Shown here piece after piece: positions 14,116 through 42,876 of a DNA stretch of 64,000 nucleotides. Within the stretch, counting starts at the first letter, position 1. Every line of letters starts with the position of its first letter. Under the pieces are notes generated by a model, which did not search any database, was not told where the DNA came from, and saw nothing but the letters and a program-made list of their open reading frames with translations. The translations under genes and the position numbers were made by a program. Source of the DNA: Thalia democratica (taxonomy: Eukaryota); NCBI GenBank assembly GCA_965202585.1, contig OZ241831.1, forward strand, positions 31,248,001-31,312,000, read 5' to 3'.

Positions 14116-14802
14116 ATGTTAACAAATGTACTAGAGCTTTTATGTTTCCTGTTTGGACGTGCATTACCGATTGTAACTATTGTTGCAATAATACACCTGA
14201 TAAAACATGTTCTGGTACCTGATGCACCGAAAAAGTCATTGTCGTCAGAATTCGTTACTTTAGAGGAATATGAAAAGTTACTACAAACCAAAGATAGAAG
14301 ACCTGTCGAAAAAGTACTGCAAACCAAAAATGTAAAACCTGCTGAAAAAGTAGATGATTTGACATCTAAAAAAATTAAAAAAGAATTGAAAGATCTTTCT
14401 TTACACCCTCTTACTAACATTAGTGCTCGATGTAAGGAAAATGATTTCTTTAAATGGAAAGCTGTAATTCAAGGACCTCAAGGAACTCCTTATGAAGGTG
14501 GAAAGTTTTTATTGCGTCTGAATTTACCCAAGGACTACCCATTTAAGCCACCAAAGGTTATTTTCAGAACAAAAATATACCATTGTAACATCAACGGTGA
14601 AGGGCGTGTAAGTTTAGACATTCTTGGTAGAAAATGGTCGCCGTGTTTGACTATAGAAAAGATTCTGTTGTCAATTCAGTCTATGTTTACCGACTGCGAC
14701 CCTGATGACTGTCTTGTGCCAGAAATAGCAGCTCAGTACGTCAACAATCGCGAAGAACACGACAGAATTTGCAGGGAATGGACAAAGAAGTACGCAACTT
14801 AA
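14116..14802 (+). CDS. Intronless UBE2D/E-like ubiquitin-conjugating-fold protein, active-site Cys replaced by Ser, with N-terminal hydrophobic extension (228 aa)
   Basis: E2 motifs W.AVIQGP.GTPYEGGKF.L...P.DYPFKPPKV.F.TKIYHCNIN..G.VSLDIL...WSP.LTI.K.LLSI; HCN and TDC.P as in UBE2E; codon AGT at 14611-14613 sits where Cys is expected; AAAATG start context; AATAAA at ~14901. Confidence 0.93.
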   Translation: MLTNVLELLCFLFGRALPIVTIVAIIHLIKHVLVPDAPKKSLSSEFVTLEEYEKLLQTKDRRPVEKVLQTKNVKPAEKVDDLTSKKIKKELKDLSLHPLTNISARCKENDFFKWKAVIQGPQGTPYEGGKFLLRLNLPKDYPFKPPKVIFRTKIYHCNINGEGRVSLDILGRKWSPCLTIEKILLSIQSMFTDCDPDDCLVPEIAAQYVNNREEHDRICREWTKKYAT

Positions 14803-15747
14803 AAAGATGATATGTAGTGACTTCGATCAACGAACTACTTTGACTTCTTTGAAGTTTTGTAATTTATAATATTTTTGTAGGCCAAGTAGTATATTGATTG
14901 AATAAACTTTGAATAACAAAGTTATTACTGTTTTTATATTATCAAGTAGATAACAATTAAATAGTGAAAGTAGTGATATATTTAAAAGAATTAACAAAAA
15001 AGACGCTATTTGAAATATGGAATGATATGTTTCTAAAAAATCTTTTAAACTTTTTTGTTTAGTGTAAATTAAATTTCAAACTACCAAAAAATATTAATAA
15101 TTATGAGAAACATAATAATTATAAACAGATATAAATTTGTTATGTTAAATATAAGTTTTACACTTAAAATCAGTTCCTTAATATAGTGCTCAATACCGCT
15201 AACCAAGTTTTTATAACTATATTTTTTAATTTAAAGGTCTAAAAAATCGTTTTTCGAACTTCAAAAGCCATTATGTATTGTGTAGAATAATTATTGTTGA
15301 TAAAATGATTAGTAGTTCTATATCTAAAAGTCTATATCTAAGAGTCTATATTTATTTAAACTGGCTCCGCATTAAAACCGAACTTCACTTGACCCAAAAT
15401 TTCAGTTCATAATAAAAAGTTAGTCGCAGACTTTTAACAACCATTCGTTTTTTACGAGAATTTAAATCTGCATTATTTGTTATTACTCATAAAATAGCAA
15501 ATAGCCGCAGCTTTGGCATAAAAACTGTCTAGGTAAATTTAAATAATAGATGACACATTTAAGACTAAGTAAAACAAATTTAAGCAGCTTGAGCTCATAC
15601 ATCAAAATTTCTATTGACTAAACAAATAATAATATTTTTGTATCTAAAACTTTATCCTCTTGAAAGTATTTTAACGGCGTAAAAAATGTAAAGGGATTTC
15701 ATTGTAACGGAAAAACTAACAACAACTTTTTTAGGAAAGCTTTAAGT

Positions 15748-15935
15748 TAGGGTAAAGTGGGCGATAACGATTCCCTTGGGCATTTTTAGTAAGTGAGGGG
15801 CGAAAATTAGTAAAGGGGCGAAGTAGGCGGAGGGCGATTTAGGCGCCAAAGTGGGCGAAAAAGAAATGCAGATGAAGAGCAAAAAAAATAAAGGTAATAA
15901 GTCTTTTAATAGTAATTTTGGTTCTTTCTCTAGAT
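15748..15935. repeat. GC-rich repeat-element terminus (GGGCGA motifs, GAAGAGCAAAAAA) interrupted by the hAT insertion
   Basis: Several gggcga motifs; gca(g/a)atgaagagcaaaaaaa occurs on both sides of the 15936-19133 insertion (~15868 and ~19153). Confidence 0.4.
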
Positions 15936-18900
15936 CAGGGGTCGGCAAACTGCGGCCCGCGAAGGGTAAATCTGCGGCCCGCGAGCACATTGTTTTTTTG
16001 AATGGAATGTGGCCCGCGAGAGAAATTTCTGCGGCCCGCGAGCTACTAAATGTGGCCCGCTGAGCAAAAATAAATTTTGGTGAATTTTTTTTCGGGAATT
16101 TGGTTTAGATTGATTAATATCGTTTTAAGTCCCTGAATAACATTTTTAACAACTAAAAAACTAAATTGCTTTGACTTGAAATTGTTAAAAAGACAGATTA
16201 GCATTTGACAAGTGATTTTCTATCAGTTTCACAATAACTTTCTTATTGCATCTGTAAATTTTTGCTGAAAAAAGAAGTGCTTGGATGCAGTAGGTTGTTT
16301 ATATAACATTTATTTAGTTATTTATATAACAAACTAAACGCAAATGCTTTCCATGTAATGCACAGTACTTAATTAAAATTTCTTTCTGTATAGTTCAGGT
16401 ATTTTGTTTAACATGTAATTAGTACCAAAATTCTTTTATAAATGTTTTATCACAGTAATTTATATCTAAGTGTGCACAAAAACATTTGAAATAGCATAAT
16501 AATAAATAGGTTTATTTTATTTTCCATTTAAAACATATTAAATTTTAGAAGGATTGTGTGCAATTTAAATTAATTGCTATAAACACCAATGTACACAGAT
16601 GTTTAGAACCATTTTTTAAACTATTTTTTTAAATACTTAAGTTAGATTAAGTGAAGTTTAATCATATATATAATTTCTTTTTCTACTTGAAAATCTTAGT
16701 GTTTACAAACACTTTTAAAACAGTATATATGCAGAAATAAAAATTTATTTGTTATGTAAGTTGGTAGGTATACAGTTTCATTTTTCAAACAAAAGTTTTT
16801 GGTAGATCGAATTTATTTCTTTGCTTTCCACCCTAATATACATATATGCTATTTTTTGTAACTACGTATTTAAAATATATTATATTTAGCGATAGTAAAT
16901 TTAATAAATTTAAAAGTTGTTAAATTAAATAGTTCAAGTTCAAGCAATTAAGCAACTTAACTTTGCCACAATATTGGACTAAGTCAGTCATTGAATATTT
17001 TTCAAATTTCAGGCTAATTTAGACATTTTTTTAGTATTTACCTTGAATTGCTTTTTTTGTTCTAAAATTTAAATCTAAGTTATCAGGCTAGTTTCTGGCA
17101 CTCATTCAAAACTTTTTTGCTTTGAAGAGTGGCAAACAAACTTATGATTTATGTTTTGTTATACTCACAGTTGTGGTTATGATTATAATATATTTTAAGT
17201 CTTGCAGCTGCTATACTTTGAAATATTATTTATATTAATTTATAAGTGTGAACAATCAGTGTTGACGTAATAACTTAAATTTGACAATTTGCTTACAAAA
17301 ATCTTGAAATTGAGATTAAAAAAAAAAAGAGTTTTAAATGTTTTTTTCTTTTAAAGCTACAGATGCAGAAATGAACAGTATAATTTTTTCGTATGTGGTT
17401 CAAATGATCCTTCCCTTCATTAATTTCATTATTAATTCTTTTGCCATTTTTTGCGTTATTTGATAACTTAGGATACAACTTAATTTACAAAAAAAAAACA
17501 ACTTCAATCAAGCTAATGCACGCAGAAAACTTTGATTGTAAATGTGCGTTAGACTTTAACTTAACTTTTTTTGTGTAAGTGTTTTAGAATCTAAATTTAA
17601 TTTATAACTATTGAAGGTCAAAAAATTGTAGAAAAAAAATTGTCTGTGGGTTTTATTTGCATCTAGAAAGTCAAAATCTGTTATTAGTTTTATGTTTCAA
17701 AGGTTCGTTTATCTGAAACTCCAAAAGTTTTGACTTTGTTTCAAGTGTCATTATATGGCACCACATTTCATAGATAACTTGTTTTTTTATTGTAGTACCA
17801 AGTTAAGTTGCTAAGACAAATGTTTTAAAATGTTTTCAGTTCAAACGGTATCTTCTTTTTATTAATTACTTTTGCTACTTTATAAATGCCTTGAAAAAAA
17901 TTTTGATCAGTCTGTGGTTACTGAAGATAATCATGCGCTTTGTTAAAACTAACGTAAACATTTTTTCGTTTCTTGCAATAACTCCTAACCAACGTTTTTA
18001 TATTTTTATAGCTCGTCTAACATTTCACATTTACTATTTATAAATGCAAAATTTTTATTGCGATAAAGATTTGTTATATACTGAAAAAAAAACTTATTTT
18101 TATTAAATGGTTAATAATCTTTCATTTTTTCGTTAAAAATATTTAAAAAAGTTAAATATACATTCAAGCTGACTTGTAACGTTTATTTTTTTGTTTATAT
18201 TTAATCTGTTAATAAACTTCGTTTTTTTTTGTAAACTTTGTTATAAACAGGATTGCAAAAAAAAAGCCTATTTTAGAAATTTGTGTACTCAGACTAAATT
18301 AAACCTGTTTAAGACATTGTTGAAAACTCAGGTCTGTGTGAAATTTATTTTCAAGTACTTTAAGTAAATCTATCAATACTCATAATAGTTTTATGATTGT
18401 AGTGTAATTTATTTATTGTAATTTATTCTAGGCTACGTACATATTTTGTACTTTTTAATAATGATAATATTTTAGTTAGTTATTTAAGCTTGATTAACAG
18501 CAATTTTTAAGCTTTTTTAACTTTTAGTAAACTAAGACTGATTTTATATTACTAAAACATTTTTAGTTGTTAAAGTGACAACTATGTAAAAGACTAGTTA
18601 TTTAGTAATAAAGAATTCGAGCAATAATTATGTAAAAAAAATTTTAGGTTTCTTCAATACAAATAGGTTTTATTTTTATGTAAACTAATTACTGAATTTT
18701 TAAAAGAGTGCAAATTTTTAAAAACTTAAAATTTATTTTCAATAATTATATGAAAAAGTTTTTTATATGAAAAATTAGTTGATAACATAAAAGAATGTAT
18801 AAAAGTCACTCATAAAGTAATTTAAGCTTGGTTTTTATAAAAAGTTAAGTAAATATTAAGTTAAACTATTAACTGAAAAAAATAGTACATAGTTTATTAA

Positions 18901-19133
18901 GAATTAAATATACTAGTCAATGTAAATGTAAATTCTTTTTTTTTTTTTAATAAATAGTCTATGTAAAAATAAAAGCAAATCCAAATAATAAACTTAATAA
19001 AAGTTAACTAAAAGTGTGACTAAAACTAAAACCAGAAGATTATTTAAATTTAACTAAAACTAAAACTGCGGCCCGCGAAGTTTTTTGAAACTTGAAATTT
19101 GGCCCGCGAGCACCAACTGCCTGCCGACCCCTG
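15936..19133 (-). mobile_element. hAT (Charlie/Buster-type) DNA transposon, decayed, with TSD
   Basis: TIRs CAGGGGTCGGCA at both ends; GGCCCGCG subterminal repeats; 8-bp TSD ctctagat / ctttagat (7 of 8), matching the NTCTAGAN preference of Charlie elements. Strand inferred from the transposase fossil in the related copy at 59239. Confidence 0.9.
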
Positions 19134-22100
19134 CTTTAGATATTCTTGAGTTGCAAATGAAGAGCAAAAAAAGGTCTTAGGTGTCTTACATGTAGTTTTT
19201 TGAGCAATCTTGTTGGATTAGGCAATAGTTTTTTTTAATTTCTTCAAAGGGAGAATTTTGAAAAAAAAAGTTTAGAAACCTTGCTTTAAGTATTACCTAT
19301 AACATTTTTGATTTAATAAATTTAAAATTCAGTTAAATTTAAAAATAAAGTCGTAAATAAAATTATTTCTTTTAGAAAGCTAACAACAATAGTTTCTAGA
19401 ATTTAAAAACACCCTTGTAATAAATTACATACACTATTCACATTTGAAATTTAAACATACAAAAAGTTAATTTAAAGAACAAGAAAAAGCACATACTTAC
19501 TGTTGTGGAGTTTATAATTCAAAATGTTTTCGGTAAACAATGTGAGTACTCCCAAGTCCCAACATCGTTTCCTAAACTTTAGCAGCAAAAATACAATAGT
19601 ACAAAACAATAAGCCTAGGGTTAATAACACCTTAGGTTAAAGATGTAGTAATTTATTTACAACCAAATGTTAACTTTTCCCAAAAAAAAAAACTAACGTT
19701 TCTTGAACAAAATAAATTTTAGTGTTCAAAATTGTGTGCGATAATGTTTAACAAAATCATTTTTTCAAAAATATTTTAATTACCTTTGTGTTTTAAACAT
19801 AAAGCTATTTCCTTAAGAACAAAAAAAAGTTAAACAATTTGATATAACGTATGAAAATAAGACTTTTTACTTAAACAACATTCATGATTTATTTTTGTAA
19901 ATAAAGTTTTATTTAGTAAGCTTATGTTTAGCTCAATATACAAAATTCTATTAAAAACCTAGACAAAAATATTTTTAAGTTTTAACCATATCGTTTCATT
20001 ATCTAAATTCTAAACAATCATCAAACTTCGTGTTATAAGATTAGTAAAAAAAGGTCTAAGATTTTATTTACATTTAAAGTAACTTTTAAATTTTATAAAT
20101 GAAGTTTAGTTACATAAAAGTAATTGAAATTGTTAAAAAAAATTTTTAGCAGCTCTAATGTTAAATGTATAAAGTAAATTTGAAGGCCTTTTAGAAAAAA
20201 TATAATAAAAATTGAATTAGAAGTAATGCTTATTTACAACTATAAAAAGAAGCATCTTGTTATACTTTATATAAAATAAATTGCTTGGTAAGATTTTAAA
20301 AAAAAAATTATGTTTCTTATTGTCACACTTTTTGCACCTATTCTTTGAAAAGCGATTTACAATTTTTGGTAATTAACAAGCTAACTTTTTAATACTTGCT
20401 AAGCTTACTCTAAACAGAAATCTCCTATCAGGCGGCAAGTATTTAAATTAGTTTTAACATTAGGTATCAAAAAAAGCGAAATTTAATAGTTATTGCAACA
20501 AAACGCACTAGTACTTTTTAACTATTGGATCAAGAGCCTGATTGATAGTTTTATCAATTTAGTATGTTTTTAAATAAAGAATGCATTGCAAGCCGCAAAT
20601 TTTTGCTATGCGGTTTTTGGGGTCGCAGTCTGCTAACCCCTGCTTAAGATCATAATTACTATTGTGGCAATGAACTTATTGCCTAAAGTTACTCAGCCGT
20701 AAAATTTTAAAATTAAAATACTTTCAAATTTTTAAGAAATCAGAAATTTTGTATTTAGCAACCATGATTTGAATTCACTAATTTAAAATTGCTTTAAACA
20801 CTATTTGAAACATAGTTAGACTTTTTGTTAGATGTTAATACTAGTTTTTTTATTAAAAGTGTAACTGAAAAAGTTTTTTATTACTTAGTAATTACATTAA
20901 ATCAATTTTATGTTCTTTATGCTTTATTTAGAAAAGTTATTATACTGAAGACTTCTTTATATTTATATACCAAAAATCTTATGTTTCTTATTAAGATGAA
21001 ATTAAATTGTAATGTTTTAAACAATTAGATGGTCATGTAGTTAAATTTTCACAAACATTTTTTATTATCTAACAAGTATTCATGACTAGCTGTTTCAACA
21101 AATTTCTTTTTTTTTAACTTAGTTTTTTTCTGACACCTGTACCACAGTTTTTTAGACATAAAGGTACCAGGGGTATTAAAACATCTGTGTCTAGGGGCTT
21201 TTTTTAAAGAGGTTGCACAATTTTTTGTTCAACAACAGATTATTTATATTGAAGCATTAAAATATAGTATAGCTTTCTATTAGATAAATGTCTAAAATTT
21301 CTAAAGTGCATAAAAATTTTTGTATTTTGAACAATTTCAATACAAAATCTTAATATGTAATCCAGTTCTTTTTTAGTCAACAAAGTCTTAAACATAAACC
21401 TAATTACTGTTTTTATTGACAATGTAAAAATTTTGCCAGTACATTGTGAGGCTAACAGGAATAACAAAACTTTTTATACATTAAAAACTTAAAACAAAGT
21501 ACTAACCAAAAAAAGTAACTATATTGTCTAATTAATAGAGAAACATATTCAATGATACGTAAAATTACTTAACTAAACAGTTCAAGTTAAAATAATTTAG
21601 CTAAAACTCAATTTAAATCAAAAATATATTTTGTATTTTAAACTAAGAACAGACGTAAATCATTATTTTATAACTTGATGAAAAATAAAAACACATATTA
21701 AAACTACGGTTTATTTAATGTTCTAAAAGTAAAAACAGTATGTGATTTCGTCAAATGTTTTCAAAGTTGAAAATGAAACCCTTCGAGTTGTATAGATTTT
21801 CATAGATACTTTTTAAAAACTTTTGATTAGTTAATTTGTAGTAAAAAGTTTCATTTGTAAATAGTGCAATTTTCGTGGTTTTGAAATTTTTGCATAGTTT
21901 ATACATTTATTCGAGAAAAAACTTGTAAAACCACGTCTTTATAACTTATTTATTTAAAAAACATACACTAAACTTTACTTAATATAAAAATCAACTATAC
22001 TTGTAAACGATATCTTGTAAATAATATTGATTCGAACTTTTAGTAAAATACTTTAAATTAATACCAATTTTAACTGATTTTTTATGAGGGGTGCAAAGAA

Positions 22101-25100
22101 AACAGGAAACCAAAATAAGTCCCTCGAAAATACACTTTGAAAAAAGTATAAAAAGAGTAATTTTTCTTTTTTGTCAACGCTGCCTAAAAATTGAGCTGAA
22201 AGTCTAATATCAAAATGTCAAAAGTGTAAATTATCCAAGTTACATCAGTTAAATAATTGCATTTTTAGTTCTATAGCTTTTTTAAAGCTAAGATGCTTAA
22301 AATATATATGTTAAAAATTAAGTTCTTAAGTATGTTAAACATTTTTATTAACTTCAAGTTTTCTTTAATTATTAATTTTTTCATATTCATGTTGGATAAA
22401 AACAAAATGAGATTAAATTTTTCTTCTGTTACATTATTTTCTATTAGATAGTCAATGTTTATTTAGATTGAGTTTTACTTTATTTTGGTCTAGATTTTTA
22501 CATTTTTTCATATAAAGTTAAGAAATTGATCTTTTTTTTTAGCAAAAGTTTATTAATTAATGGCAAATTATCTTACTGTTCAAACTTTGATTAAACTTTG
22601 TAAAATATTGTAAGTAATTTGAATAAAACTTAATTTCAATTTGTAAAATCCAATGTGCATGATCAGTATGTAGTCCTAACATTAACATTGTCTTTCTAAT
22701 GATACTTTTGTTAAGTTTTTATTAAGTTTCACAAATACTTTTCAGTTTTTTGGGTAAAAAATGTTATGCTAAAATTATTTTTATGATAGGAGTATGAAAA
22801 ACTTAAACTTTCATTCATTATCTTTTACAAAATCTATTGAATTATTTAAGTAATGTTTAAAACTCATTTAGTTATTATAAAATAAATTTAACACACACTC
22901 AACTGATTCAGGCACAATATTAATGAAATTGATATAAAATAAAATACTATCAATGTACAAAATGGTTACCTAATTTTGGGTCCTATTTTAGCTGATTAAA
23001 AAAGCTCTTTAAATGACTAATATATTTAGAATACTTGTCAAGGACAAAACTTCAAATGTAGAGATGTTGTATATATTATTAATTGTAACTATAAATATTA
23101 TAAAAACTGTTATACTGTAAACATGGAAAATTGTGGAGAAAAATGTCAGATATAGAAAAAAAATGTAAATCGTAGCAAAATATGTACAATTTGGCAAATG
23201 TGACAAACTAAACTAAAAATCAATAAAATATTTTTATAACATCTATATTTCAAGTTTTTGTCCCTAATAAATCAGATTTAATTTAGAGGCTTTCTTAATC
23301 AGTTACAATATTGTTCTTTTATTTTTTAGGAGGGACATCTACAAAACTTTTAGGTTTTTTTTTAATTGTAATTTAATTTTATTGTAAGTTATCTGTCAAT
23401 ATCTGATTACTGTAGCATACTATTGTTTTCTTACCATGAATAATAAGATTAATTATCTAATCTTTTAACTATTTATTTAATTTTGAATTTTCTTAATGAA
23501 GTACAAGAAACTTAAACATATTTATGCATTTAACAATTTTCAATGCTTTTTGAAATAAGATGCATACATATTTGTGATTAGATATACTAAAAAAATGGTA
23601 TTAAAACGATAGTTGAATTTTTTTAATGTAAAAAAGATAAAAATTTACAACCATACTAACCTTTTTGTTGATATGACACTTGTAAGTTTGTGAGTATACA
23701 CTATACAGCTAAATAAATCAGTGTTGGAAAAAAATATAGAACTCTGAAATACCATGATTTAGACAATTTATTTCAGAAAAATCTGGAAAAACATAGAAGT
23801 TAAGAAGTTTTGATTAATGACCTGGTAAAACTTGGAACTTTGAACATAAATCACATAAAAACCTGAATTTTTAAACAATGATATATGTGATTTTATGAAA
23901 TTTAGATTAAATGCAAAAAAATCTTCTAAATGAAATGCATAAATTTTTTTTATAAGTTTTTTATTGAAAACATATTTAAAGTAGCATTACAGTATCTTTT
24001 GAATATCTATAAACCAATTCAGACAGTTTTCACCTTAAATAAAAGTTTTTACTGAAAATAAAATATAAGCTTTGTCTTTTTAAAACCTAAAAACATTAAA
24101 AAAAACCTGGATAAATATATAAAAATACACTTCTAAATGTAGAAAAAGTAAAAATGGCTTTCATTTTTCAAATGTGAATTTTAATAATATTTTTGTATTT
24201 AATATAAAATTCTTAAAAAAAATAACACAAACAATTAAACTTTTCAAACTTATTCAAAACTGTCTTTAATTTTCTTCGCCTTGATTCCAACTTCACAAGT
24301 TTACAATTATGAACATTCACAAGTTTATGATCACAAGTTTTCCCCTTCTTTGATTTTCCTTTATATTTATTTTTTCTTATTAAATACATGACAAACTTTT
24401 AACTACGTCAGATTGCATTACTTACATTACACTCAATATACTCAGGCATGGTCAAACTTTTGTATCAAGCTCAGGCTGATATAAAACTTAACAAGGTTTT
24501 GAAAATTTTCATACATTCTAGAGTATTTTTGCCCATGGATATTTTTCTTTATTAGTTATTAGTTTCTATGTTTTGATTAGTCTCTTAATTAATACTTTGG
24601 CTTTAATTAATATTTAAGCTTGATTATTTTTTTTGTTTTCATTTTGTGGCTGATGTTATTTAACTTCTTCTCCATGAATTCAGGCTAGTTTGATGTTAGT
24701 TATTAGTAACTCAGGCATGCTTTTTTGACACAAAAGTCGCAAACCTGTTATGTATACAATTATTTATCTTCAACTAAATTTTATATGGTAGTAAGGACTA
24801 CATACATTTTTTTAGTTTATCATAGCACCTAATCTAAACGGTTATAATTATTGTAAAAACCACTCATAAATATAAATGTGTAGATTTTAATAAAGTTTCA
24901 AAGATTTAACTGTTATTAATAGACTCTAGAAAAGCTTTTTATAAATTTTGAGTTTTAGCTCTGTTCAGGGTTGCCAAAAAGCCTTGAAACCTGGAATCAC
25001 CTGAACTTTAACAATTGAGACTAAAAAACCTTGAAAAACCTAAATTTTGAAAAATTAAAAAAAAAAACCTGGAAAAACCTATAATTTTTAACAATTCTAA

Positions 25101-25650
25101 CTTGTTTATTAATAAAATTTCAAATGACTCAAAATCTATCATACAGATAAAAAACGTTTGTTATCTTAGATTTTTATTGTTAAAATCACATTTAAAGTAG
25201 CTTTAGAGTATCTTTTTATTCTCTTTAACGCAGTTTCTTACTTAAAACTTAGCTTTAAACTAAATATAGATCCAAAAATGTATCTTTTAGAAGCTTGGAG
25301 GAAATTTTAGAAACCTTGTGAAAATTTGCTAAAAACATTTGACAAACCTGATACATCCATTAAAGTGAAAATAGTGAATTGTTGATACTAAATTATTTGC
25401 AGATTAGATTCTTTTACAGACTCTACAAATTAGTTCTACTTGTGAACTTAAAATATTTTCTTTTTTTAAATTAAAACATGTATTTAAATTTAATGTATTT
25501 CAATTTCTTGTAAGTCTTTAAAATTTTAATTCAACTATTTGTTTTTCATTTAAGTATATCAAATAATTTAAAATCTCTACAAATACAACTTAAATAATAT
25601 ATGGTTACAAAAGACGTAGAAACGATGCTCAAATTATTTGGTCTTAAGAT

Positions 25651-25730
25651 CTGGTGCACGAAGAACCTTATGGTTATTGAGTCGCACACCACAGACACCC
25701 TTTAGCGTCTTGTCTAGGATAAGAATAACA
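25651..25730 (+). repeat. Short interspersed repeat, copy 3
   Basis: ctggtgcacgaagaaccttatggttattgagtcgcacaccac matches the 1883 and 12420 copies. Confidence 0.65.
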
Positions 25731-26417
25731 AGAGACAGCAGTTGTTTAACAGATTTTTTAATTTTTAATTTTACTTTTAACAAAATAAAACCGTCTTTTA
25801 GCTCTAGTTTAGATGAAAAATAATGTATAGTAATATAAAACGTTTTTTTGAAAAGTTTAAAAATTTTTTGAACAACTGCTGCCTCTTAAACCTAACACTT
25901 TAAATACTTTATTCTATATTTATACAAATAAATTATTTTTTAAAAATAATTTTTAATTTAAACAAGAATCGCAGCCACTAAATCTGTATACTAAGAACTA
26001 CTTTCAGGATAACTCTGGATAATTTTTAAGATTTTTATTTACTTTAGGTGACTCAACACACTAATGCCCAGTTAAACACTAAAAAAAAGTAATGCTAACT
26101 AAGTTTTTATATTTTAAACTATGGGTAGTTTTAACATTTTTTTAAACTTCTAACTGTTTTTTTAGATAGTAAATGAGAATTTAATGAACGAGCAACAACT
26201 CTTTGTTATTAGTTTTTAATTTTATTGAAATATTTAGTTATAAAACTTAAGTTATTTTTTTATCCTTGTGGCTATCTCTTTTTTCACTATGACAAGTTAT
26301 CACAACATAACTTTAATAACAATCAAATATAGAAAAATTTACATATTTTCTGTTATTGCTTAAAAGAATAATAAACAATGAACTTCACCTCAAGATCAAC
26401 AACAGCATCTGAAACAA

Positions 26418-26460
26418 TCCTACGACCGGTTTCGTCCTATTTAGGACTCATCAGGCAGGA
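26418..26460 (-). ncRNA. Minimal type I hammerhead ribozyme (Penelope pLTR type)
   Basis: Minus strand reads UCCUGC CUGAUGA GUCC-UAAAUA-GGAC GAA ACCGGU C GUAGGA: intact core, 4-bp stem II, 6-bp stem I with one G-U, palindromic ACCGGU stem III, GUC cleavage triplet. Confidence 0.85.
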
Positions 26461-27490
26461 ATAGTTTAAAAGAAAAAAGTTTTAAAAGGTATTAGAATGT
26501 AGAAAAGAGTATATTCATTTATGATATGAAAAATCTAGTATAACTTAGCTAGTTTTAGGTAACAAAATATAGCTTTTAGACATTAAAGATAGTTTTAAAA
26601 CTTGAGAGGCAGCCGTATTTAAATTTTATGCTGAAGATGCTATTATTCTTTTTTTTTACATGATGGCCAAGTAACTTTGAAACCTGGAATTAAAAAATTT
26701 AAGTAAAAAACCTCCAAAAGAATTTAGACAATATTTTTTTTTGAACAAAATATTTTTCATATAAAAATAATCAATGTTGCCAAATAACCTGGAATCCTGG
26801 AAAAACCCTGGAACTTGTAATTTAGGCTAAAAAAACCTAATAAAACCTAAAAATTGAGAAATAAAAAAAACTTCCTGTAAAATCCTGGAATTTTGAACAT
26901 TAATACCTAAACACCTTGAGTTTTAAAAGTTTATACATATTAAGTAGTTTAATTTGGATTTGAAACAAAAATCTACAAAAGATCTCATATTAATTTTTTT
27001 TTGTCATAATCAACTTTTTTTACCACATAAAAAGTAGCCTACAGTATATTTTGAATTTTGTAATACTACTTAACACAGTTTTAACCTTAAACTAAAAATA
27101 AAACCAAAAACTTGAATCTTAAAAAACCTGAAAGAAATTGAGAAAACATGGAATAAATTTCTAAAAAAACAAGTTGCAACCCTTTTTGTTTTAAAGTGAG
27201 ATGAAATAAATTACAAAAAATTTTTCAAGACGTATGAATCGAGTTGCCACAAAACCTGGAATTTAACTATTTAGGATATAAAACCTGGAAAAAACTAAAA
27301 TTTAAGAAATTAAAAAAAACCTGGAACTTAGAATTAAAATCAGTAATAAATTTGAAATTTTATATAAGTACTACATGATAAGTATCACTATCTAATTTAT
27401 AAAAATAATTATTATAATTTAGTCTTGATACGAATAATTTACCATAAAGATAAAAAGTGTTGTCAGTATCAATGTTCTATTTTATCAAAA

Positions 27491-27862
27491 CAGGGTTGCC
27501 ACTTTACCTGGAATCCTGGAAAAAAATGTAATTTGACAATTTAGACAAAAAAAACCTGAAAAACATGGAATTCAAGAAAATTTTGACAAAAACCTGACAA
27601 ACCTTGAATTTTTAAGAACTTGAACATGTTCAGTAGTAAAATTTCGGTTTGACTCAAAAATATTATCGTATAGATAAAAAAAAATTTCATCAACAAATTT
27701 TTTTTTTAATACATTTTAAGTGGCTTTAGAGTATCTTTTAAATATTTTTATACTACTGAACTCAGTTTCTTACCTTAAAATTAACTTTACACTAAAAATA
27801 GTCCCAAAAATGTGTACTTTTAAAAACATGGAATAAATTTGAAAAAACGAGTGGCAACCCTG
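27491..27862 (+). mobile_element. MITE family A copy with perfect TIRs, nested in an older copy
   Basis: cagggttgccact ... agtggcaaccctg; the interrupted family body resumes after 27862 (acatttaaggtagctttaaagtatc). Confidence 0.85.
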
Positions 27863-30800
27863 TCAAATGTACATTTAAGGTAGCTTTAAAGTATCATTTT
27901 AACGTTGTTATAAAAAACATTTTTTTAGTTTGAAACTGAAAGTAGACCCAAAACGTGTAGTTTCAAAAACCTGCACAAAACTTCCCAAAATCAGTGGCAA
28001 TCTTAAAAATTAAACATAATTTATCTCTATTATTAAAAAAAATTCAAATTATAACTTAAATATTTTTAGGTTACAAAGATTAAAAATGCTTAAACTAATA
28101 GCAAGGTTGCCACACATAAGGGTACTCGGAATAACTCAAGACATTTTAAAAATCTAGAAATGTCAAGATGACTTTTTTTTTCAGGATGTTTAATTTATTT
28201 TTACCCGGATGATTCAGGAAAGTTCTTACTTTAATAAAAATCTTAGAATAGTTTAAAGATGTTATTTTTTTAAATATCAGGACAGATACCATCTAGAATG
28301 GGATTTAATTGATCCAGTTTCAATATTTTGTTGTTTTATATAACAAATTTTGTTTACGTATATAATTTTTATTGATTTAAAAATTAATATAATTATGTTT
28401 TAGCCATGGGAATACTTCTTCACTATTCATAGAAATAACAACTTAGTTTTTATTATTCTGAAATTAATATATATTATGATTTAAGTTAGTTCATGCAAGT
28501 GATTACTTTATGTTATAAAATTAAAGTTAGTCAATTAAAATTACAAAATAAAAATTCAAACAGTTTTCTACTCTATATAGAGTTAATTGACATAGTTGCA
28601 CAACATAATCAAAAATTTTTGTATTTAATTTTAATTGTTTTAAAACTTTAAACGTTAATGATTTGAAAACAGCTTTTAATAAAATGAGTAATTATCTAAT
28701 GCAAAAACATACACATGCAACCTTCAGGGTCAAAAAATTTGTAATTTATCAATTTAGACTAAAAAAACTAAAAAGACCTGAAATAGGAAATATTTAGAAA
28801 AAAACACCTGAAATTTCTAGCAAAATTCACTAAAATGGCTTAAAAAGCTGAAATTTAAACAGATTTTACATGTTAACTATTAAAATTTAAATTTTATCTT
28901 TAAATCTACAGTACAAATAAAAAAAATTTGTCATCATCAATTTTATTCATTAAAAAAACACACTAAAAATAACATTAAAGTATCTTTTCAAGGTTGATAT
29001 ACTAGTTTTTAACCTTAAACTCACCTAAAAACTAAAAATAGAACGGAAAAAGGAACCTTCCAGAAAAAATTGAAAAAACCTTGAAGAAAATTTTCAACAA
29101 AATTTGCAACCCTGATTCTTCTTTTTAATGATTAAGATAAAAAATAAACTTAAGGATTAAGTAGCTTGCGCCAGAGGAGAAATTTATTATAGAAGGACTT
29201 GTAAAAAATAACTCAGGATGATTTAGCACAATTTAAGGCAGGGAGAAAGCAGTGTAATATTTATTCAAGCGTGAAATTATTAACATGTAACAAACAAAAG
29301 TTTTATACGCTTTAGCACTTAATTGACATGAAAACTATTAGCATTTTACCAACTCTGGACTTCAAGGTCACTCAGAGACTAGAGAGTTTTTTTGAATCAA
29401 AGAGAAGCAAACATTTTACAGTAAAAGTTTGTTTATAACTGTTTTCTTAAATTAGAAAATTTAAGTTTAGAATAATTTATAAGATATGAACCAGTTAAAT
29501 TTAGTTATTCAGTAATTAGGAAACGTTTTTCTCATCATGATAAATTAAGATCAGGTGAATATTTGATTTTTGTTTAATTAATCTCAGATACGTTGTCTTA
29601 GAACAAAATTGTTAGTGTAAGTTAAAAAATATAAGTTATATTTACAAATACATTCAGTTTTATATAAATAAAGTAGATGCCTATCAATTAGTTGTAATAA
29701 ACCTTTTTTTTTTACTATTTTAAGAACGAGTTTAATGGCCAAAACTTATATATTTAATTGCTATACACTATTAACACTAAATTGAGCGAAAACAATAATT
29801 TGATACCTTTTGTAGGTTTTTTAAATAGTTTTTTTTTTAAATAACAAGTTCAAAAGTAAAGGTATGAAAAGTTTGTTAATTAACTTAACTAACTTTTACA
29901 TTTCATGAGCTGAACTTTTTGCTTGCTAAATTTTATAAAAGGAACAAAGTCGTAAATTAATTACGAAAAGGATATACATTTAAAAAGATAATTCAATTGT
30001 TAAATTAATTTAGTTTTTAGATAAAAATTATAGCTTAAATTTCAACAAAAATAAGTGGTCATTCAGTTTTTTATCAAACTTACAGCCAAAAAACCTGGAA
30101 ACCTGAATAACCTGAAACTTGACAATTTAGGCTAAAAAGCCTGGAAGATCTGGAATTTGAGAACTTCGAAAAAAATAACCTGGAATTTTGAACAAAAGTT
30201 ACTAAAAAACCTGGAATTTTAAACAATTTTCACATTTTTGATATTAATATTTCAATTGGACACAAAAAATATATCATAGAGATAAAAACTTTTATCGTTA
30301 TCAAATTTTTTTTATTAAGAAGCACATTTAAAGTAGCTTAACAGTATCTTTTTAATGTTTTTATATAGTGTAACACAGTTTTTTACTTTAAAATTTTTGT
30401 TTTAAACTAAGAAAAAACTCAACTTAATCTTTTCTAAACCTAAAGAAAATTTGCCACATACATCTGGCAACTCTGAATCTATTTGGTTAGTTTATGCAAT
30501 TTTGTAATTCAGTTTTTTTCTTAAACATTGTTTTTGACTGTCAATCAGTTTATCATTATTGCTTGAAAATCAATAAATTTAAATAATTACTCTTCTTTTA
30601 AAGTTAAGTATTTGCACAAACGAGGAATATATTTTTTCTAAAGAACAACTTAAGTAATCGATTTAAATGTTTCAAATTACAATTTCATTTATAACGTAGA
30701 TAGTTCATCTACTAGTCTGTGAATACAGTTCATTGTTTAAAAAGGCTCTTACTATTGTAGTTGAGGATGCAAATATTTCATAAACCATAAATTAAACAGC

Positions 30801-31419
30801 GTTGCTAAAAAAAACTGAAATTTGGTAATTTAGGCTAAAGTTACCTAGAAAGACATGAATATATTTTTGTTTAATTTGTAATTTCGAATAAAAATCACTA
30901 AAAATCTTTGAATTCTTAACAGTTTTTACAAGTATTAAGATTAATGTTCGACAAAAAAAATCTGTCGTATAGATAAATAAAACTTTGCCATCATCAATTT
31001 TTTTTTTTAAACACATTTAATCCATGTTAAAAAGAGATCTTTTCAAAAATTTCTATGCTATTTAACACACCTTAAACTAATTTTCAAACACAAAATAGAC
31101 CCAAAAGCGTGTAACTATGAAAAACTGGAAAATTTTTTGAATATTTGAAGCAAATTTGACAAAAAAAATTTGGCGACCCTTTCTAAACAAGCATCAACAC
31201 CATGCAGACGCTAATGGTGCATATTGATTGTGTCTGGATTTAATATTTTCTTGTATAGTTTAAGTTCAAAAAACATTAAAATATAAATAAGGTGGTGAGA
31301 TTTCCGGTTGAAACTGAAAATTGTAATAATGAACATTAGTAAAAAGTTTTAGTCTATCGAAAGTTTAATAACGAAAGGTATAAACAAACCTTGTTTTAAC
31401 TCGAGGTTGTTTCACGGCA

Positions 31420-31426
31420 TATAAAA
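31420..31426 (+). promoter_or_regulatory. Candidate TATA box of the second E2 gene
   Basis: TATAAAA in a locally GC-richer context (cacggcaTATAAAAgtccaggc), ~190 bp upstream of the ATG; weak evidence in so AT-rich a genome. Confidence 0.3.
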
Positions 31427-31617
31427 GTCCAGGCAAAGGCTTTGTGTTTTTTTCTTTATTTTTGTAGTTTATTTTAATTATACAGCAATATTAATTTGAT
31501 TTTATATACTATACTGAGTACAAAAACTCTACCAACTTTTTTTTCAAAAAAGAATATCATGAAAATTATCAGTATATACATAATGCAGCATTTGTTTAAA
31601 TATTGGTTTTGGTTATT

Positions 31618-32280
31618 ATGTCATCCAATCAAACAAACGAAATTGAAGACTATGTTAAGGAGTTAGATTTAAGGTGCTTTGAAGAAGTTTTTGGTACTGA
31701 AACTTGGAGCAATATTATCAATGCTCAGCGAAACGTATCGTCTTTGGATGCTTACAATAAGTCGGTACACTGCCAAAACTTCAAGATTGCTTCTGTAGAT
31801 GACAATGATCAGGAAACTACCGTTGCGAAACGAAGACTTCTAAAAGAGCTGAAAGAGATAAATATAAGCTCTCCAGCTTACATAAGCGCTTACTTAAAAG
31901 AAGACAACTTGTTAGAATGGGAAGCTTCGATTCAAGGACCTCTGAAATCTCCCTATGAAGGTGGAAAGTTTTTATTGAACCTAAAATTTTCTAAGGATTA
32001 TCCGTTTAAGCCACCAAAGGTTACTTTTAAGACCAAGATATACCACTGCAATATTAATAGCGACGGGTATATAAGCTTAGATCTTCTTGGTTCTAATTGG
32101 GCCCCTGCTATGTCTACAGAAAAACTTTTGTTGTCAATTCATTTGTTTTTTACCGACTGCAACCCTGTTGACTGTCTTGTGCCAGAAATAGCAGCTCAGT
32201 ACGTCAACAACCGCGAAGAACACGACAGAGTTTGCAGGGAATGGACAAAGAAGTACGCAACTGAAGAAGCTGAATTTTAG
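31618..32280 (+). CDS. Intronless UBE2D/E-like ubiquitin-conjugating-fold protein, active-site Cys replaced by Ser, with soluble N-terminal extension (~220 aa)
   Basis: RRLLKELKEI...WEASIQGP..SPYEGGKF.L..F..DYPFKPPKVTFKTKIYHCNINSDGYISLDLL; AGC at 32074-32076 in the Cys position; first ATG at 31618 (the ORF track starts at a TTG); 3' flank homologous to that of the 14116 gene through AATAAA. Confidence 0.92.
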   Translation: MSSNQTNEIEDYVKELDLRCFEEVFGTETWSNIINAQRNVSSLDAYNKSVHCQNFKIASVDDNDQETTVAKRRLLKELKEINISSPAYISAYLKEDNLLEWEASIQGPLKSPYEGGKFLLNLKFSKDYPFKPPKVTFKTKIYHCNINSDGYISLDLLGSNWAPAMSTEKLLLSIHLFFTDCNPVDCLVPEIAAQYVNNREEHDRVCREWTKKYATEEAEF

Positions 32281-33391
32281 TGACTTCATTGAATGAAGTA
32301 CTGTAATTTATTTGAACATTTGTAATTTATAATATGTTCCCAAGTTGAGTAGTACTTCGATAGAATAAACTTTAGATTAAATGTAAAACTGTTTCTATTT
32401 ATATGTGGGTAGTTGTATACAAGTTGCCTGAAATAAAGTACTTTAAGTTATAGATATAAGTTTTTTTTTTAAGTTTAAATTCATGCTTAAGTAACTTTGT
32501 GCAATATGCGTATACCCACAATGGTGATTATGATTAAAGTCCGTAGCTATGGACAATTCTTATACATAAATGTACACTGTAGAAATATTTTTTGTACATT
32601 CATGTATACAAAATAAAAAGTTATTAATATGTAAAAACTGATTTTTTTTTTACTTTTTGTTAATAAATTTTAGTTTAATGTATGCTAAAAGACAAGTTTA
32701 TATACTTGAATGATAAAATTTTAAAACAAAATCCTTAAACAAATTGCTCTGGTGAGTTACATGGTTCAAAATTTTGACTTAATATATGACGTAATATAAG
32801 AATTGAATTTGTGTAAATTTAAATGTTTCTTATCATTCGTGTTATTATTTGAAAACAGTTAACGGTAACTATTTGTTAAAGCTTAAGTTAGATGTCAAAA
32901 AACTGCGGCCCGCAATATCTAATTTATTTAAAAGCACACCTTTAGAAAAAAATTGTACTAAAACTAACAACTGGGCCTTAAGAAAAGTTAGAAATCTTAA
33001 ATTTTGTATTATTGCTTAATTTATAAGACTCGTGGTTTAAAAAAGTTCTTTTTATTGTTTTCTACAAATATTTCAAAAAAAAAATTGGTCAGTCAAGACA
33101 TTTTTAAACAGAGTAAAAATGCTTTTTCTAGGAAACTTGCAATTTATATAGCCTAGATAAATTGTAGTATTTATTCTAAAATGTATAAACTAGCCAAATA
33201 ATTTTATTTTCAATTAATTATATGCGTAAACTGTCGAGTTAGTTAGAAATCAAATAACAAGATTGATAATAAACTTTAATTTTCTGTTTTAATATTAGTT
33301 TTTAAAACATACATATTTTTAGATTCAAGCTAAACTACTTTAAATTTTAATAAATAAAATTTGCGTCTACTTTAATTACTTAAAAAAAAAT

Positions 33392-41662: not shown

Positions 41663-41962
41663 TCAACTGTGGTTGCATAGAATTTTTTGGTTCTCCAGTA
41701 GCTTGTTGTTGATCAGAAATTTTTGAATGTCTTGTACTTTCGGTTTGCCAAGAAATTTATAGTTGTCCAGTAGCTTGTTGTGGCCTAGAAATTTGTTGCT
41801 GCGAAGTAGTTTCGGATTTCCTAGAAATTTGTGGTTGACCAGTAGCTTGTTGTTTATTTGTGATTTTTCAGATTTTTTCATCTGCACAGTAGCATTTTGG
41901 AGTTGTCGTTGTTTTTTAGGTTTTTCTCGTCTGACTTTTGCTCTTCGGCTCCAAAACCAATT
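41663..41962 (-). CDS. Divergent homeobox gene, 3' exon (helix 3 NWFWSRRAKVRRE plus tail)
   Basis: Acceptor actttag|AAT TGG TTT TGG AGC CGA AGA GCA AAA; the W-F-x-x-R-R-A-K homeodomain signature; frame ends at TGA 41663-41665. Confidence 0.78.
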   Translation of the reverse strand, partial: NWFWSRRAKVRREKPKKQRQLQNATVQMKKSEKSQINNKLLVNHKFLGNPKLLRSNKFLGHNKLLDNYKFLGKPKVQDIQKFLINNKLLENQKILCNHS

Positions 41963-42157
41963 CTAAAGTTTTAATAATTAAAAAATAAAGCCATTTATTT
42001 TAAATATATGTTTTATAAAAGTCTAGATCTATGCCAATATTTTGTAACATCTATTCTATTTGATAATTAAGGTGCTAAATTTCTTTTAAAATTGCTGTAT
42101 ACAGTCATAGAGGCTTTTAAAAGTCTAAAAGTTACTAGTATACAGTCAATATCTAAC

Positions 42158-42382
42158 CGCTACACATCTCAAAGGCAGACGAATTTGATTTGCAATACGC
42201 TTTCTATTTTCTAAATCCGGATTCTTATTAATCAAGAATACACCTTTAAAAAAACCCCTCTGAAAATCATACAAACACTGATCCGGGGATAAAATTTTTG
42301 CGCCGGGCTGGTACCTTAAGGAGGCTCTGATATCGTTTGGCGACACTGAAGTCAATAATACTGGTTTATTACTCCTCATCAT
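42158..42382 (-). CDS. Divergent homeobox gene, exon with helices 1-2
   Basis: ...FFKGVFLINKNPDLENRKRIANQIRLPLRCVA|gttaga aligns with homeodomain positions ~16-46 (F20, P26, R31, A35, L40, V45); a 195-bp phase-0 GT-AG intron (41963-42157) joins it in frame to NWF. Confidence 0.75.
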
Positions 42383-42673
42383 AACTTAATTTGTTTTAGC
42401 ATGGCAAAAGCACACCTTTCTCAGTAAATAAAATAGATTTGTTTTTATTATTAGTTATTAAGTGTAACAAAATTAAGAACACAACGGCAGCTATGAAGCC
42501 TAAGTATAAGTAATGCCAAAAATAAGAGTTTTTTTTATAAGTTTATTAAAAATAAAATTAAATATTATAATAAGATTTAATTTAAAAACATTTAAAATTC
42601 TTCTTTCTTATGAAAATATTTATTTTGAAACATTATTTTTTGTTGTGGTTTCTAATCCAGTTAATTAAACAAA

Positions 42674-42876
42674 CCAGTAATTGGATAATTCGAATTTTGA
42701 GAAATAAAATGGTCCGGATTTAGATTTGGACGTTGTTGTCCAACAAAGTCGGGTGAAGTTATACCAGCCGAAGCGTAACCATGTAGGTGACTGCTGTTGC
42801 TAGGAGGAATTTGTTGTTGCCAGGATGCTGGAACTAAAGGAGCCTGGTGAAAGTTAGGAGAGCCTGTTTGAGGCAT
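42674..42876 (-). CDS. Gln/Pro/Ser-rich exon, probable upstream exon of the homeobox gene
   Basis: MPQTGSPNFHQAPLVPASWQQQIPPS... with AAAATG context and a coding-like GC rise. Possible phase-1 donor ACTG|gtttgt would join in frame to aag|TT ATG ATG at 42384, but that acceptor is weak. Confidence 0.45.

Follow-up and report, generated by a model that had tools for sequence, protein, structure and literature searches.

E2 folds that lack the catalytic cysteine are known as single, ancient cofactors (UEV1/MMS2, TSG101 and COP10); UEV1/MMS2 and TSG101 act as cofactors or adaptors, and in Drosophila Morgue the site is occupied by Gly, as it is in the Gly subfamilies described below. COP10 has Ser at its active site, is reported to be unchargeable and acts by binding, and human UBE2E2 C139S supports CRL4-DET1-COP1 equally to wild type, catalysis being dispensable there (PMC11864197). 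The same substitution in UbcM2 (UBE2E3), C145S, leads to a stable oxyester that accumulates in cells, with 1–10% of the protein loaded in 3 h in vitro (PMC2172591).

Two intronless open reading frames (ORFs) with Ser in place of the catalytic Cys are found in the window analysed here, a stretch of 64 000 nucleotides from the pelagic tunicate Thalia democratica (GCA_965202585.1, contig OZ241831.1, positions 31 248 001 to 31 312 000 of the forward strand). The mitochondrial code of this genome is that of a tunicate; a search for GH6, a tunicate marker domain, gave no match, and its controls gave none either. The ORFs and the codons of interest within them, numbered from the first letter of the window, are as follows.

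14116–14802, + strand: ORF A, 228 aa, an intronless UBE2E-derived E2 variant and an atypical family member
31618–32280 (stop 32280), + strand: ORF B, 220 aa from the family-typical ATG, an intronless UBE2E-type protein and typical main-clade Ser-E2
14611–14613, + strand: AGT Ser codon at the catalytic-Cys position of ORF A (direct sequence reading, alignment)
32074–32076, + strand: AGC Ser codon at the catalytic-Cys position of ORF B (direct sequence reading, alignment)
14710–14712, + strand: TGT Cys codon for the Pro of DPLV in ORF A (catalytic +33)
32173–32175, + strand: TGT Cys codon for the Pro of DPLV in ORF B (catalytic +33)
14770–14772, + strand: TGC codon for Cys at catalytic +53 of ORF A, where canonical UBE2E has Ala
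32233–32235, + strand: TGC codon for Cys at catalytic +53 of ORF B, likewise replacing Ala
31738–31755, + strand: S-S-L-D-A-Y motif of the ORF B N-terminus, conserved within a fast-evolving, low-confidence extension
32089–32115, + strand: L7 loop of ORF B, in the place of the canonical S-P-A E3-binding motif and hypervariable between paralogs

Both ORFs match Pfam UQ_con (PF00179; E = 1.7e-45 for ORF A and 8e-40 for ORF B) over positions 1–139 of the 140 in the model, and for both the nearest solved structures are UBE2E1, UBE2E2 and UBE2E3 (E = 1e-54). Alignment with these three proteins puts the ORF Ser on the catalytic Cys, with V-S-LDIL facing I-C-LDIL. A preliminary description made from the letters alone, which had reported two intronless UBE2D/E-type ORFs with Ser at the catalytic Cys, is thus confirmed by the Pfam match and the UBE2E alignments. 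The differing Ser codons and the shared DPLV>DCLV change that it listed were read directly at the positions above, and its estimate of roughly 65–70% identity agrees with the 68% DNA identity of ORF A and ORF B over the first 110 UBC-domain codons (the proteins are 60% identical). Two of its readings require correction: HCN is not a change but the native UBE2E form of the HPN motif, and ORF B, there started at TTG 31603, most likely begins at ATG 31618 (MSS...), as judged from the matching starts of the paralogs.

An AF2 model of ORF B built on a deeper alignment reached pLDDT 93–97 over the UBC domain (residues 70–215), a model from a shallow family-only alignment (pLDDT 56) having been discarded. 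The best Foldseek matches of the retained model are UBE2E1/E2, with TM 0.92–0.97 and rmsd 0.8–1.1 Å. The nearest named proteins to both ORFs are UBE2E, the HCN and TDCNP signatures are present, and the derived variant clade attaches to the canonical UBE2E group, with moderate basal support (57/79). A separate canonical Cys UBE2E in the genome (L049) groups with metazoan UBE2E, and all variant copies belong to the derived clade; the AU test for all non-Cys members as one clade gave p = 0.088. Neither ORF matched Pfam UEV at E ≤ 0.01 and the HCN motif is retained, which sets both apart from classical UEVs. Little or no variation was seen across the family in HCN, in Leu-Asp or in the Asn and Asp of the gate loop. 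The S-P-A L7 loop that is conserved in canonical UBE2E is not kept (entropy 1.5–2.3 bits versus 0 in the canonical proteins), and the N-terminal extensions range from 44 to 237 aa.

The two genes, presented in the preliminary description as a pair, turn out not to be isolated: a UBC-domain search of the genome returned 150 scored matches, and the residue at the catalytic position was Ser in 54 (AGT 34, AGC 19, TCA 1), Gly in 7, Lys in 1 and Cys in 7. Five further Ser were read in decayed copies, giving at least 59 Ser-bearing copies in the genome; the thioester-position cysteine is therefore replaced by Ser in ORF A, ORF B and at least 57 others. Sequencing error at the Ser codon, a misread TGT or TGC that the preliminary description had named as a way in which it could fail, is excluded because so many independent copies read Ser. 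Its proposal of a lineage-specific family was correct but understated, the genome search having found a family of about 60. Two cysteines are new to this family. The Pro-to-Cys change (TGT) at +33 occurs without exception in the 43 copies of the group made up of the array described below, the window and L042, while other Ser subfamilies retain Pro; the Ala-to-Cys change at +53 is fixed across the derived family and also found in 41 of 42 members of other derived subfamilies. Sister subfamilies bear Gly, Lys or Cys at the catalytic position.

Most Ser copies lie in a 2-Mb array on another chromosome (C4), interleaved with a divergent homeobox family, and at least 17 of its approximately 52 loci are visibly disrupted. 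Three further features connect the window to this array.

30480–31617, + strand: ORF B upstream region, homologous to the upstream DNA of paralogs on the other chromosome and part of a 2.3-kb duplication unit
20907–25035, no strand: DNA separating the two E2 genes, collinear with C4-array spacer (81–83% identity to L096)
42146–42382, − strand: divergent homeobox gene amplified alongside the E2s, first homeobox exon (Pfam Homeodomain E = 0.004, under the gathering threshold)

The homeobox exon is convergent to ORF B and about 10 kb downstream of it. At least 24 homeobox paralogs were found, all within C4:30.9–32.36 Mb and interleaved with E2 copies.

Selection on the family is uneven along the protein. 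For the UBC domain of 32 intact paralogs the maximum-likelihood omega is 0.364, with lnL −4693.6 against −4780.1 at omega = 1, a gain of 86 lnL units; omega = 1 is rejected for the family as a whole, which places the UBC domain under purifying selection. Between pairs of copies the median dN/dS is 0.29 for this domain, compared with about 0.86 for the N-terminal extension. Constraint is strongest in the active-site segment (omega about 0.07–0.11; dN 0.063 and dS 0.93 in the active-site window), and in segments defined beforehand omega is 0.11 at the active site, 0.18 in helices a3–a4, 0.46 in helix 1 and 1.25 in the L7 loop. Among 41 main-clade copies the Ser codon has switched between AGT and AGC at least eight times with zero residue changes, and on the tree of these flips the SPA-loop positions changed 9–12 times each. 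The claim of the preliminary description that selection keeps the Ser is upheld by these values. Evolution is free or diversifying in the L7 loop, which in canonical proteins binds RING and U-box E3s, at the residue beside Phe62 and along the N-terminal extension.

A second kind of conservation is confined to the 3′ end of the genes.

32152–32262, + strand: closing 37 codons of ORF B, in which synonymous sites are conserved to an unusual degree (ORF A equivalent 14689–14799)

Here the family mean third-position identity is 0.855, versus 0.71 upstream, and dS is 0.2–0.27; between ORF A and ORF B the corresponding identities are 0.97 and 0.56. RNAalifold gave only −1.2 kcal/mol for this conserved coding stretch, which argues that it holds no RNA structure, and an Rfam search returned an unrelated hammerhead only. 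Identity in the upstream region (0.73) is no higher than at third codon positions (0.71), so that no extra promoter or regulatory constraint can be claimed.

We postulate, at about even odds (probability roughly 0.5), that the Ser-E2 family consists of pseudo-E2 regulators, non-catalytic or very slow holders of ubiquitin and not normal enzymes. The intronless, lineage-specific family derives from the class III E2 UBE2E and has been amplified in tandem. Early in its history the catalytic Cys would have become Ser by a single base change (TGY to AGY), and selection has held the Ser since. The UBC fold is intact, and HCN, the Leu-Asp after the site, the gate loop and the C-terminal helices are strongly constrained. 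The most probable mode is that of pseudo-enzymes, in which binding would have taken the place of ubiquitin transfer. Such proteins probably lack catalysis and probably occupy or scaffold the proteins with which UBE2E works, using the conserved face formed by the active site and the C-terminal part; COP10 and UBE2E2 play a comparable part in the DET1 complex. A single multi-exon DET1 gene and a single UBA1 UFD locus were found in the genome. Any charging by E1 would at most be slow and would lead to a ubiquitin oxyester that is long-lived and essentially a dead end, like that of engineered UBE2E3 C145S, and the variable surfaces could confer paralog-specific specificity. They may, as the preliminary description had suggested, be inhibitors, ubiquitin traps or adaptors. 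That the Gly, Asn and Lys sister lineages are maintained argues that the family, taken overall, can do without a nucleophile. The genes form a birth-and-death array together with the divergent homeobox family, and this co-amplification suggests a stage- or tissue-restricted role, for example in the germline or early embryo. Several points weigh against the pseudo-E2 reading. First, an invariant Ser (and not Ala or Gly) in an intact active site, as in the main clade, fits a chemical role equally well. Second, a single scaffold partner such as DET1 leaves about 30 intact paralogs unexplained. The outcome of the transcript searches described below, the lack of extra constraint upstream and, for ORF A, the missing upstream region and relaxed constraint count against it as well.

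The first of these points leads to a different proposal, possible if somewhat unlikely, in which Ser is a working nucleophile and slow E1 charging yields a long-lived E2-O-ubiquitin oxyester as the functional species. The oxyester could be a nuclear cargo of the importin-11 type, a ubiquitin reservoir or trap, or a donor for dedicated E3s only. Consistent with this are the invariance of Ser in the 41 main-clade copies despite the silent flips, the position of the active-site segment as the most constrained, and the retention of the HCN Asn, the Asp after the site, the gate-loop Asn/Asp and the crossover-helix residues. Helix 1, which contacts E1 and E3, is partly kept, as its omega of 0.46 indicates, and UBE2E3 C145S forms a stable oxyester in cells and is bound in its loaded form by importin-11 (PMC2172591). 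However, the Gly, Asn and Lys lineages keep HCN, the Asp and the gate loop and are still constrained (dN/dS 0.26–0.51); the constellation of surrounding residues therefore does not speak for chemistry. Charging is moreover reported not to occur in COP10, which also has Ser at this site (PMC11864197), and the charging of C-to-S E2s is slow, with a product that has been called a dead end (PMC2172591). A broader and more speculative version, which we think unlikely, has a family of about 60 copies built on oxygen-ester ubiquitin chemistry, where slow-charging E2-O-ubiquitin would be a signalling or nuclear-import species or a trap for fast-evolving E3s, the Lys-site relative would perhaps form an isopeptide, and the whole would be a germline or early-embryo module co-regulated with the homeobox genes.

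It is doubtful that the window copies are non-functional relics of the birth-and-death array whose frames are open by chance, although the level of decay in the array (at least 17 of the approximately 52 loci) and the transcript searches lend some weight to the idea. No RNA sequencing run containing ORF A was found. In four RNA runs chosen via mitochondrial COX1, comparison with window positions 31000–33000 gave only cross-matches of 31–58 bases to the E2s of other organisms; the RNA searches for the two ORFs thus yielded no RNA evidence in either direction, and the protein searches gave no family member from a transcript-derived source. Among the first 121 protein matches retrieved, 28 have Ser at the site, all of them ENA records, and those that were traced are Tara Oceans DNA contigs; exact look-up of 11 family and canonical proteins in the protein collection found none, and no report of the present family was found in the literature. 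The preliminary description had held that absent expression together with dN/dS near 1 would undo its proposal; omega = 1 is rejected for the whole family.

The relic explanation bears differently on the two ORFs, which are not equivalent. ORF B is a typical, constrained member that looks functional: its open frame alone is not improbable under neutrality (P 0.15–0.27), but its dN/dS to the nearest paralogs is 0.15–0.20, its terminal-branch omega about 0.23, a distance-based estimate, and nearly all family-invariant residues are present. ORF A is atypical and faster-evolving. Its DNA homology to the paralogs begins only at 14446, and it has lost the family 5′ region, N-terminus and acidic C-terminal tail; a novel hydrophobic N-terminus (residues 8–26) reaches a Kyte-Doolittle maximum of 2.43. 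On its terminal branch dN is 0.115 and dS 0.205 (omega about 0.56, distance-based), which favours decay, yet dN is below dS and the probability of no stop if neutral is about 0.03 over that branch with indels not counted. ORF A may be a divergent offshoot, either neofunctionalised or in early decay.

Very improbable, in our judgement, is a relocation of catalysis to the +33 Cys, the +53 Cys or the HCN Cys, which would make these proteins true thioester-forming E2s. The fixation of two new cysteines (+33 in 43/43 copies of the group defined above, +53 near family-wide) argues for it, as does the +33 position, which by established E2 structure is in the loop flanking the active site. Against it, we know of no relocated E2 active site, other Ser subfamilies still have Pro at +33, and canonical UBE2E natively carries the HCN and TDCNP cysteines yet depends on its catalytic Cys, normal function being lost in both C145A and C145S (PMC2172591). 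Lastly, a mobile element or virus carrying an E2 was rejected, as the copies are arranged in tandem in AT-rich units of host-like character, the spacers are collinear, and a homeobox family of the host accompanies them.

The mutation used by biochemists to freeze E2–ubiquitin complexes has a natural counterpart here. In a close vertebrate relative it is fixed, amplified to dozens of copies and under selection. A frozen active-site face beside a free-running E3-binding loop is an unusual selection map and predicts the working surface. The natural variant series of Ser, Gly, Asn and Lys, with a possible Cys revertant in the Cys-bearing subfamily at C4:83 Mb, offers a probe of what a non-transferring E2 is for, and the association with amplified homeobox genes hints at a programme of development or reproduction.

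The case is less novel than the preliminary description implied: a natural Ser-site E2 variant had already been described in plant COP10 (PMC11864197). Arabidopsis COP10, of the CDD/DET1 complex, shares with the family a UBE2D/E-type UBC fold and Ser for the catalytic Cys, but it arose independently, in plants, and serves a single partner complex. The present family is animal and UBE2E-derived, with an N-terminal extension, about 60 copies and a diversifying E3-binding loop. UBE2E3/UbcM2 C145S and UBE2E2 C139S represent the same E2 subfamily and the same substitution, but are laboratory mutants, whereas here the change is natural, ancient and selected, and is accompanied by two new cysteines and the loss of the conserved SPA loop. 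UEVs are ancient single genes that have lost the HPN motif, in contrast to a family that keeps HCN and the active-site loop. With canonical UBE2E1/2/3 the family shares 52–59% identity in structure-based alignments, an rmsd of about 1 Å, HCN, TDCNP, an N-terminal extension and the WTKKYAT end; it differs from them in being without the catalytic Cys, and the canonical copy L049 is kept separately in the same genome.

Both E2 genes of the window, ORF A and ORF B, give full-domain Pfam UQ_con hits (E=1.7e-45 and E=8e-40, respectively), and the closest solved structures to both are human UBE2E1, UBE2E2 and UBE2E3 (E=1e-54). Alignment to the UBE2E chains places Ser in the catalytic Cys column of each (V-S-LDIL and I-S-LDLL vs I-C-LDIL). 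The window features are as follows, with the Ser and DCLV codons read directly.

14116-14802, plus strand: ORF A, intronless, 228 aa
14611-14613, plus strand: Ser codon of ORF A, AGT
14710, plus strand: DPLV to DCLV codon of ORF A, TGT
26418-26460, minus strand: complete type I hammerhead ribozyme between the E2 genes (Rfam RF00163, 41 bits, E=1.7e-7)
31603-32280, plus strand: ORF B as open frame, intronless
32074-32076, plus strand: Ser codon of ORF B, AGC
32173, plus strand: DPLV to DCLV codon of ORF B, TGT
42146-42382, minus strand: first homeobox exon of a divergent homeobox gene (weak Pfam Homeodomain match)
44645-45109, minus strand: C2H2 zinc-finger ORF
55301-56059 and 62553-63848, minus strand: two paralogous C-type-lectin-domain ORFs, one carrying a stalk rich in Ser/Thr plus a transmembrane-like stretch

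These readings uphold the preliminary description, which had reported two intronless E2 ORFs with Ser at the catalytic Cys and a DPLV to DCLV change common to both. The HCN sequence was not counted as a change because it is the usual UBE2E version of the HPN motif. The start codon of ORF B is almost certainly ATG 31618 (MSS...), in line with nearly all of its paralogs. In an AF2 model built on an 80-sequence alignment, the UBC core of ORF B has a pLDDT of 93-97; the model fits UBE2E1/E2 with an rmsd of 0.8-1.1 Å, and confidence is low over its first 63 residues.

The window corresponds to C7:31248001-31312000 of the source assembly (802 Mb, nine large chromosomes). Searching that assembly with the ORF A UBC domain yielded 294 candidates and 150 scored matches; we retrieved 90 loci and determined the residue at the catalytic site of every one. 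At least 59 copies have Ser (AGT in 34, AGC in 19, TCA in one, plus five decayed copies), so the further Ser E2s anticipated from the window pair do exist. Gly is found in seven copies: six nearly identical genes lie at C9:9.5-9.7 Mb, and the seventh, of 387 aa, is at C4:77.5 Mb. Lys (AAA) is found in one, the intact 262-aa gene L045 (G000:C1:85047395-85047820, minus strand), whose dN/dS against its relatives is 0.26-0.32. The Lys site parallels engineered C85K E2s, made to obtain isopeptide-linked E2-ubiquitin. Within the UBE2E type, Cys is confined to the canonical UBE2E gene (L049, C4:21.25 Mb) and one subfamily (C4:83.0-83.6 Mb); the remaining Cys copies (L070, L071 and L091) are members of other E2 families. 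The main array, about 52 loci at C4:30.33-32.35 Mb, is a birth-and-death array: about 30 copies remain intact at full length, another 4 are truncated at the N-terminus, and at least 17 carry disruptions.

Trees place L049 with canonical metazoan UBE2E and all other copies in one derived clade. Ser is at the site in 28 of the 121 proteins first retrieved, and Gly or Asn in a few; the site-variant proteins among them are all ENA records, and those traced are Tara DNA contigs. All close relatives of the family derive from Tara Oceans plankton data, and protein searches found no named member from an annotated genome. The guess of a lineage-specific family holds. Two of the Tara proteins from related plankton species, P0001 and P0002, have a tandem pair of UBC domains, with Ser at the site in the C-terminal domain and a degenerate N-terminal domain (Asp at the site in P0002). 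UBE2D-like proteins of Gossypium (P0012, P0018, P0031, P0032 and P0106), some with tandem UBC domains, have Gly, Asp or His in the catalytic column; Cys-less E2s seem to have expanded separately in plants. Tara unigenes (87-92% identity) are also nearest to the mitochondrial COX1 (L072, G000:C1833:8315-9631), which has 32 AGA/AGG codons at Gly positions conserved in other animals; under the tunicate mitochondrial code (TGA as Trp, AGA/AGG as Gly), identity rises from 51% to 57% and classical motifs are restored. The code and the plankton matches together identify the source animal as a pelagic tunicate.

Several subfamilies lie away from the main array. The Cys subfamily at G000:C4:83.0-83.6 Mb (L051, L052, L056, L063 and L088-L090; codon TGC) has a changed gate loop, DPHRPLV, and in the tree nests next to the Ser gene L064 within the Ser clade (support 100/99). 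This placement suggests a Ser-to-Cys reversion; the alternative, a single clade of all non-Cys genes, was not rejected (AU p=0.088). A 196-aa Ser subfamily at G000:C8:28.6-29.6 Mb (L046-L048, L053, L057, L062, L066 and L067) has a two-residue deletion ahead of the site and has lost the Asp after it; with a dN/dS of 0.9-1.1, it appears to be evolving either neutrally or under diversifying selection. A short TGA-TGT-ACGTCA-like motif lies directly 3' of the stop codon in L054, L064, L051 and L049, that is, in deeper subfamilies and canonical UBE2E; the main clade is without it.

Homology between ORF B and its paralogs L018 and L019 spans 2.3 kb of DNA and takes in the ORF together with 1.1 kb of upstream and 0.5 kb of downstream sequence. 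Since it reaches beyond the ORF, the copies were made by DNA duplication, which rules out retroposition of bare mRNA as their origin. Paralog comparison revealed no conservation of the upstream region above that of synonymous sites. The spacer between the window E2 genes (20907-25035 and 27050-27878) and the homeobox gene region (41668-43233) are collinear with a stretch of the C4 array. At least 24 paralogs of the homeobox exon are present, all of them confined to C4:30.9-32.36 Mb, where they alternate with E2 genes in convergent pairs 7-14 kb apart, an arrangement repeated in the window. The window is therefore a transposed fragment of an E2-plus-homeobox array, and the two families amplified together. 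The nearest tree partners of ORF A (L004, L003 and L007) and of ORF B (L018, L019 and L023) are all on C4, and thus the window genes are not each other's nearest relatives.

ORF A is the atypical one of the pair. Its DNA homology to paralogs starts only at 14446, a novel hydrophobic segment forms its N-terminus, the family motif S-S-L-x-x-Y-E persists as a degenerate copy, and the acidic tail is cut off by a stop codon. Its terminal branch has a dN of 0.115 and a dS of 0.205, vs 0.016 and 0.070 for ORF B, which shows a dN/dS of 0.15-0.20 against its nearest paralogs. The probability that the UBC frame of ORF A would still be open after that much neutral change is ~0.03, so the gene was constrained during at least part of its history.

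Constraint along the family protein is very uneven. Across 493 pairs of intact main-clade genes, median pairwise dN/dS is 0.29 for the UBC domain (<0.5 in 98% of pairs) and 0.86 for the N-terminal extension. A codon model gives an omega of 0.364, with omega=1 worse by 86 log-likelihood units. A sliding window over the active-site stretch gave a dN of 0.063 and a dS of 0.93. Omega was also estimated for structural segments set beforehand, pooling 14 independent pairs: the active-site segment is at 0.11 and the last two helices at 0.18, values of 0.31-0.49 apply to helices 1 and 2, the sheet and the L4 loop, and the L7 loop reaches 1.25. Canonical E2s bind RING, U-box and HECT ligases through the S-P-A motif of L7, which does not vary among canonical UBE2E sequences from cnidarians to mammals. 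In the family, the motif has an entropy of 1.5-2.3 bits, and each of its positions changed 9-12 times on the tree; the L4 residue following the conserved Phe is as variable. In 41 main-clade copies, the Ser codon switched between AGT and AGC at least eight times with no amino-acid change, which together with the active-site omega bears out the proposal that selection keeps the Ser. Relative to canonical UBE2E, the fixed changes include Cys-to-Ser, Pro-to-Cys 33 residues later (main clade only) and Ala-to-Cys 53 residues after the site (whole derived family).

Synonymous sites are strongly conserved in the last 37 codons (14689-14799, 32152-32262 and the matching stretch in all paralogs). Third-position identity between ORF A and ORF B is 0.97 there vs 0.56 upstream, and is still 0.6-0.8 against distant subfamilies on other chromosomes. 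We found no RNA structure or Rfam family to account for this; possible explanations are gene conversion and a shared target, of small RNAs or otherwise at the nucleic-acid level.

We favour the reading that the Ser-E2s act by binding, presumably with the conserved face made up of the active site and the C-terminal part, and that specificity may come from the N-terminal extension and the variable L7/L4 surface. We think that the nucleophile is not essential to the family, judging by the Gly, Asn and Lys lineages, which keep the same active-site surroundings at a dN/dS of 0.26-0.51. A serious rival, because the Ser itself is so strictly kept, is that it forms a functional ubiquitin oxyester. UBE2E3 C145S slowly builds up a stable oxyester in cells and is 1-10% loaded after 3 h in vitro; its authors term this product, which is bound by importin-11, a dead-end complex (PMC2172591). 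Relocation of the catalytic cysteine is possible, the two new fixed cysteines being its sole support.

A binding role would have counterparts in known systems. Plant COP10 has Ser at its active site, is not chargeable and partners DET1, and in the DET1 complex human UBE2E2 serves as a scaffold without catalysis, its C139S mutant being equal to wild type (PMC11864197). With a single DET1 locus and a single UBA1 UFD locus, the genome shows no parallel expansion of these partners. Literature searches found no published description of the Ser-E2 family. E2-fold pseudo-enzymes, including one natural Ser case, are already known; new in the Ser-E2 family are the descent from an animal UBE2E, the extent of amplification, the pattern of selection and the coupling with a homeobox array.
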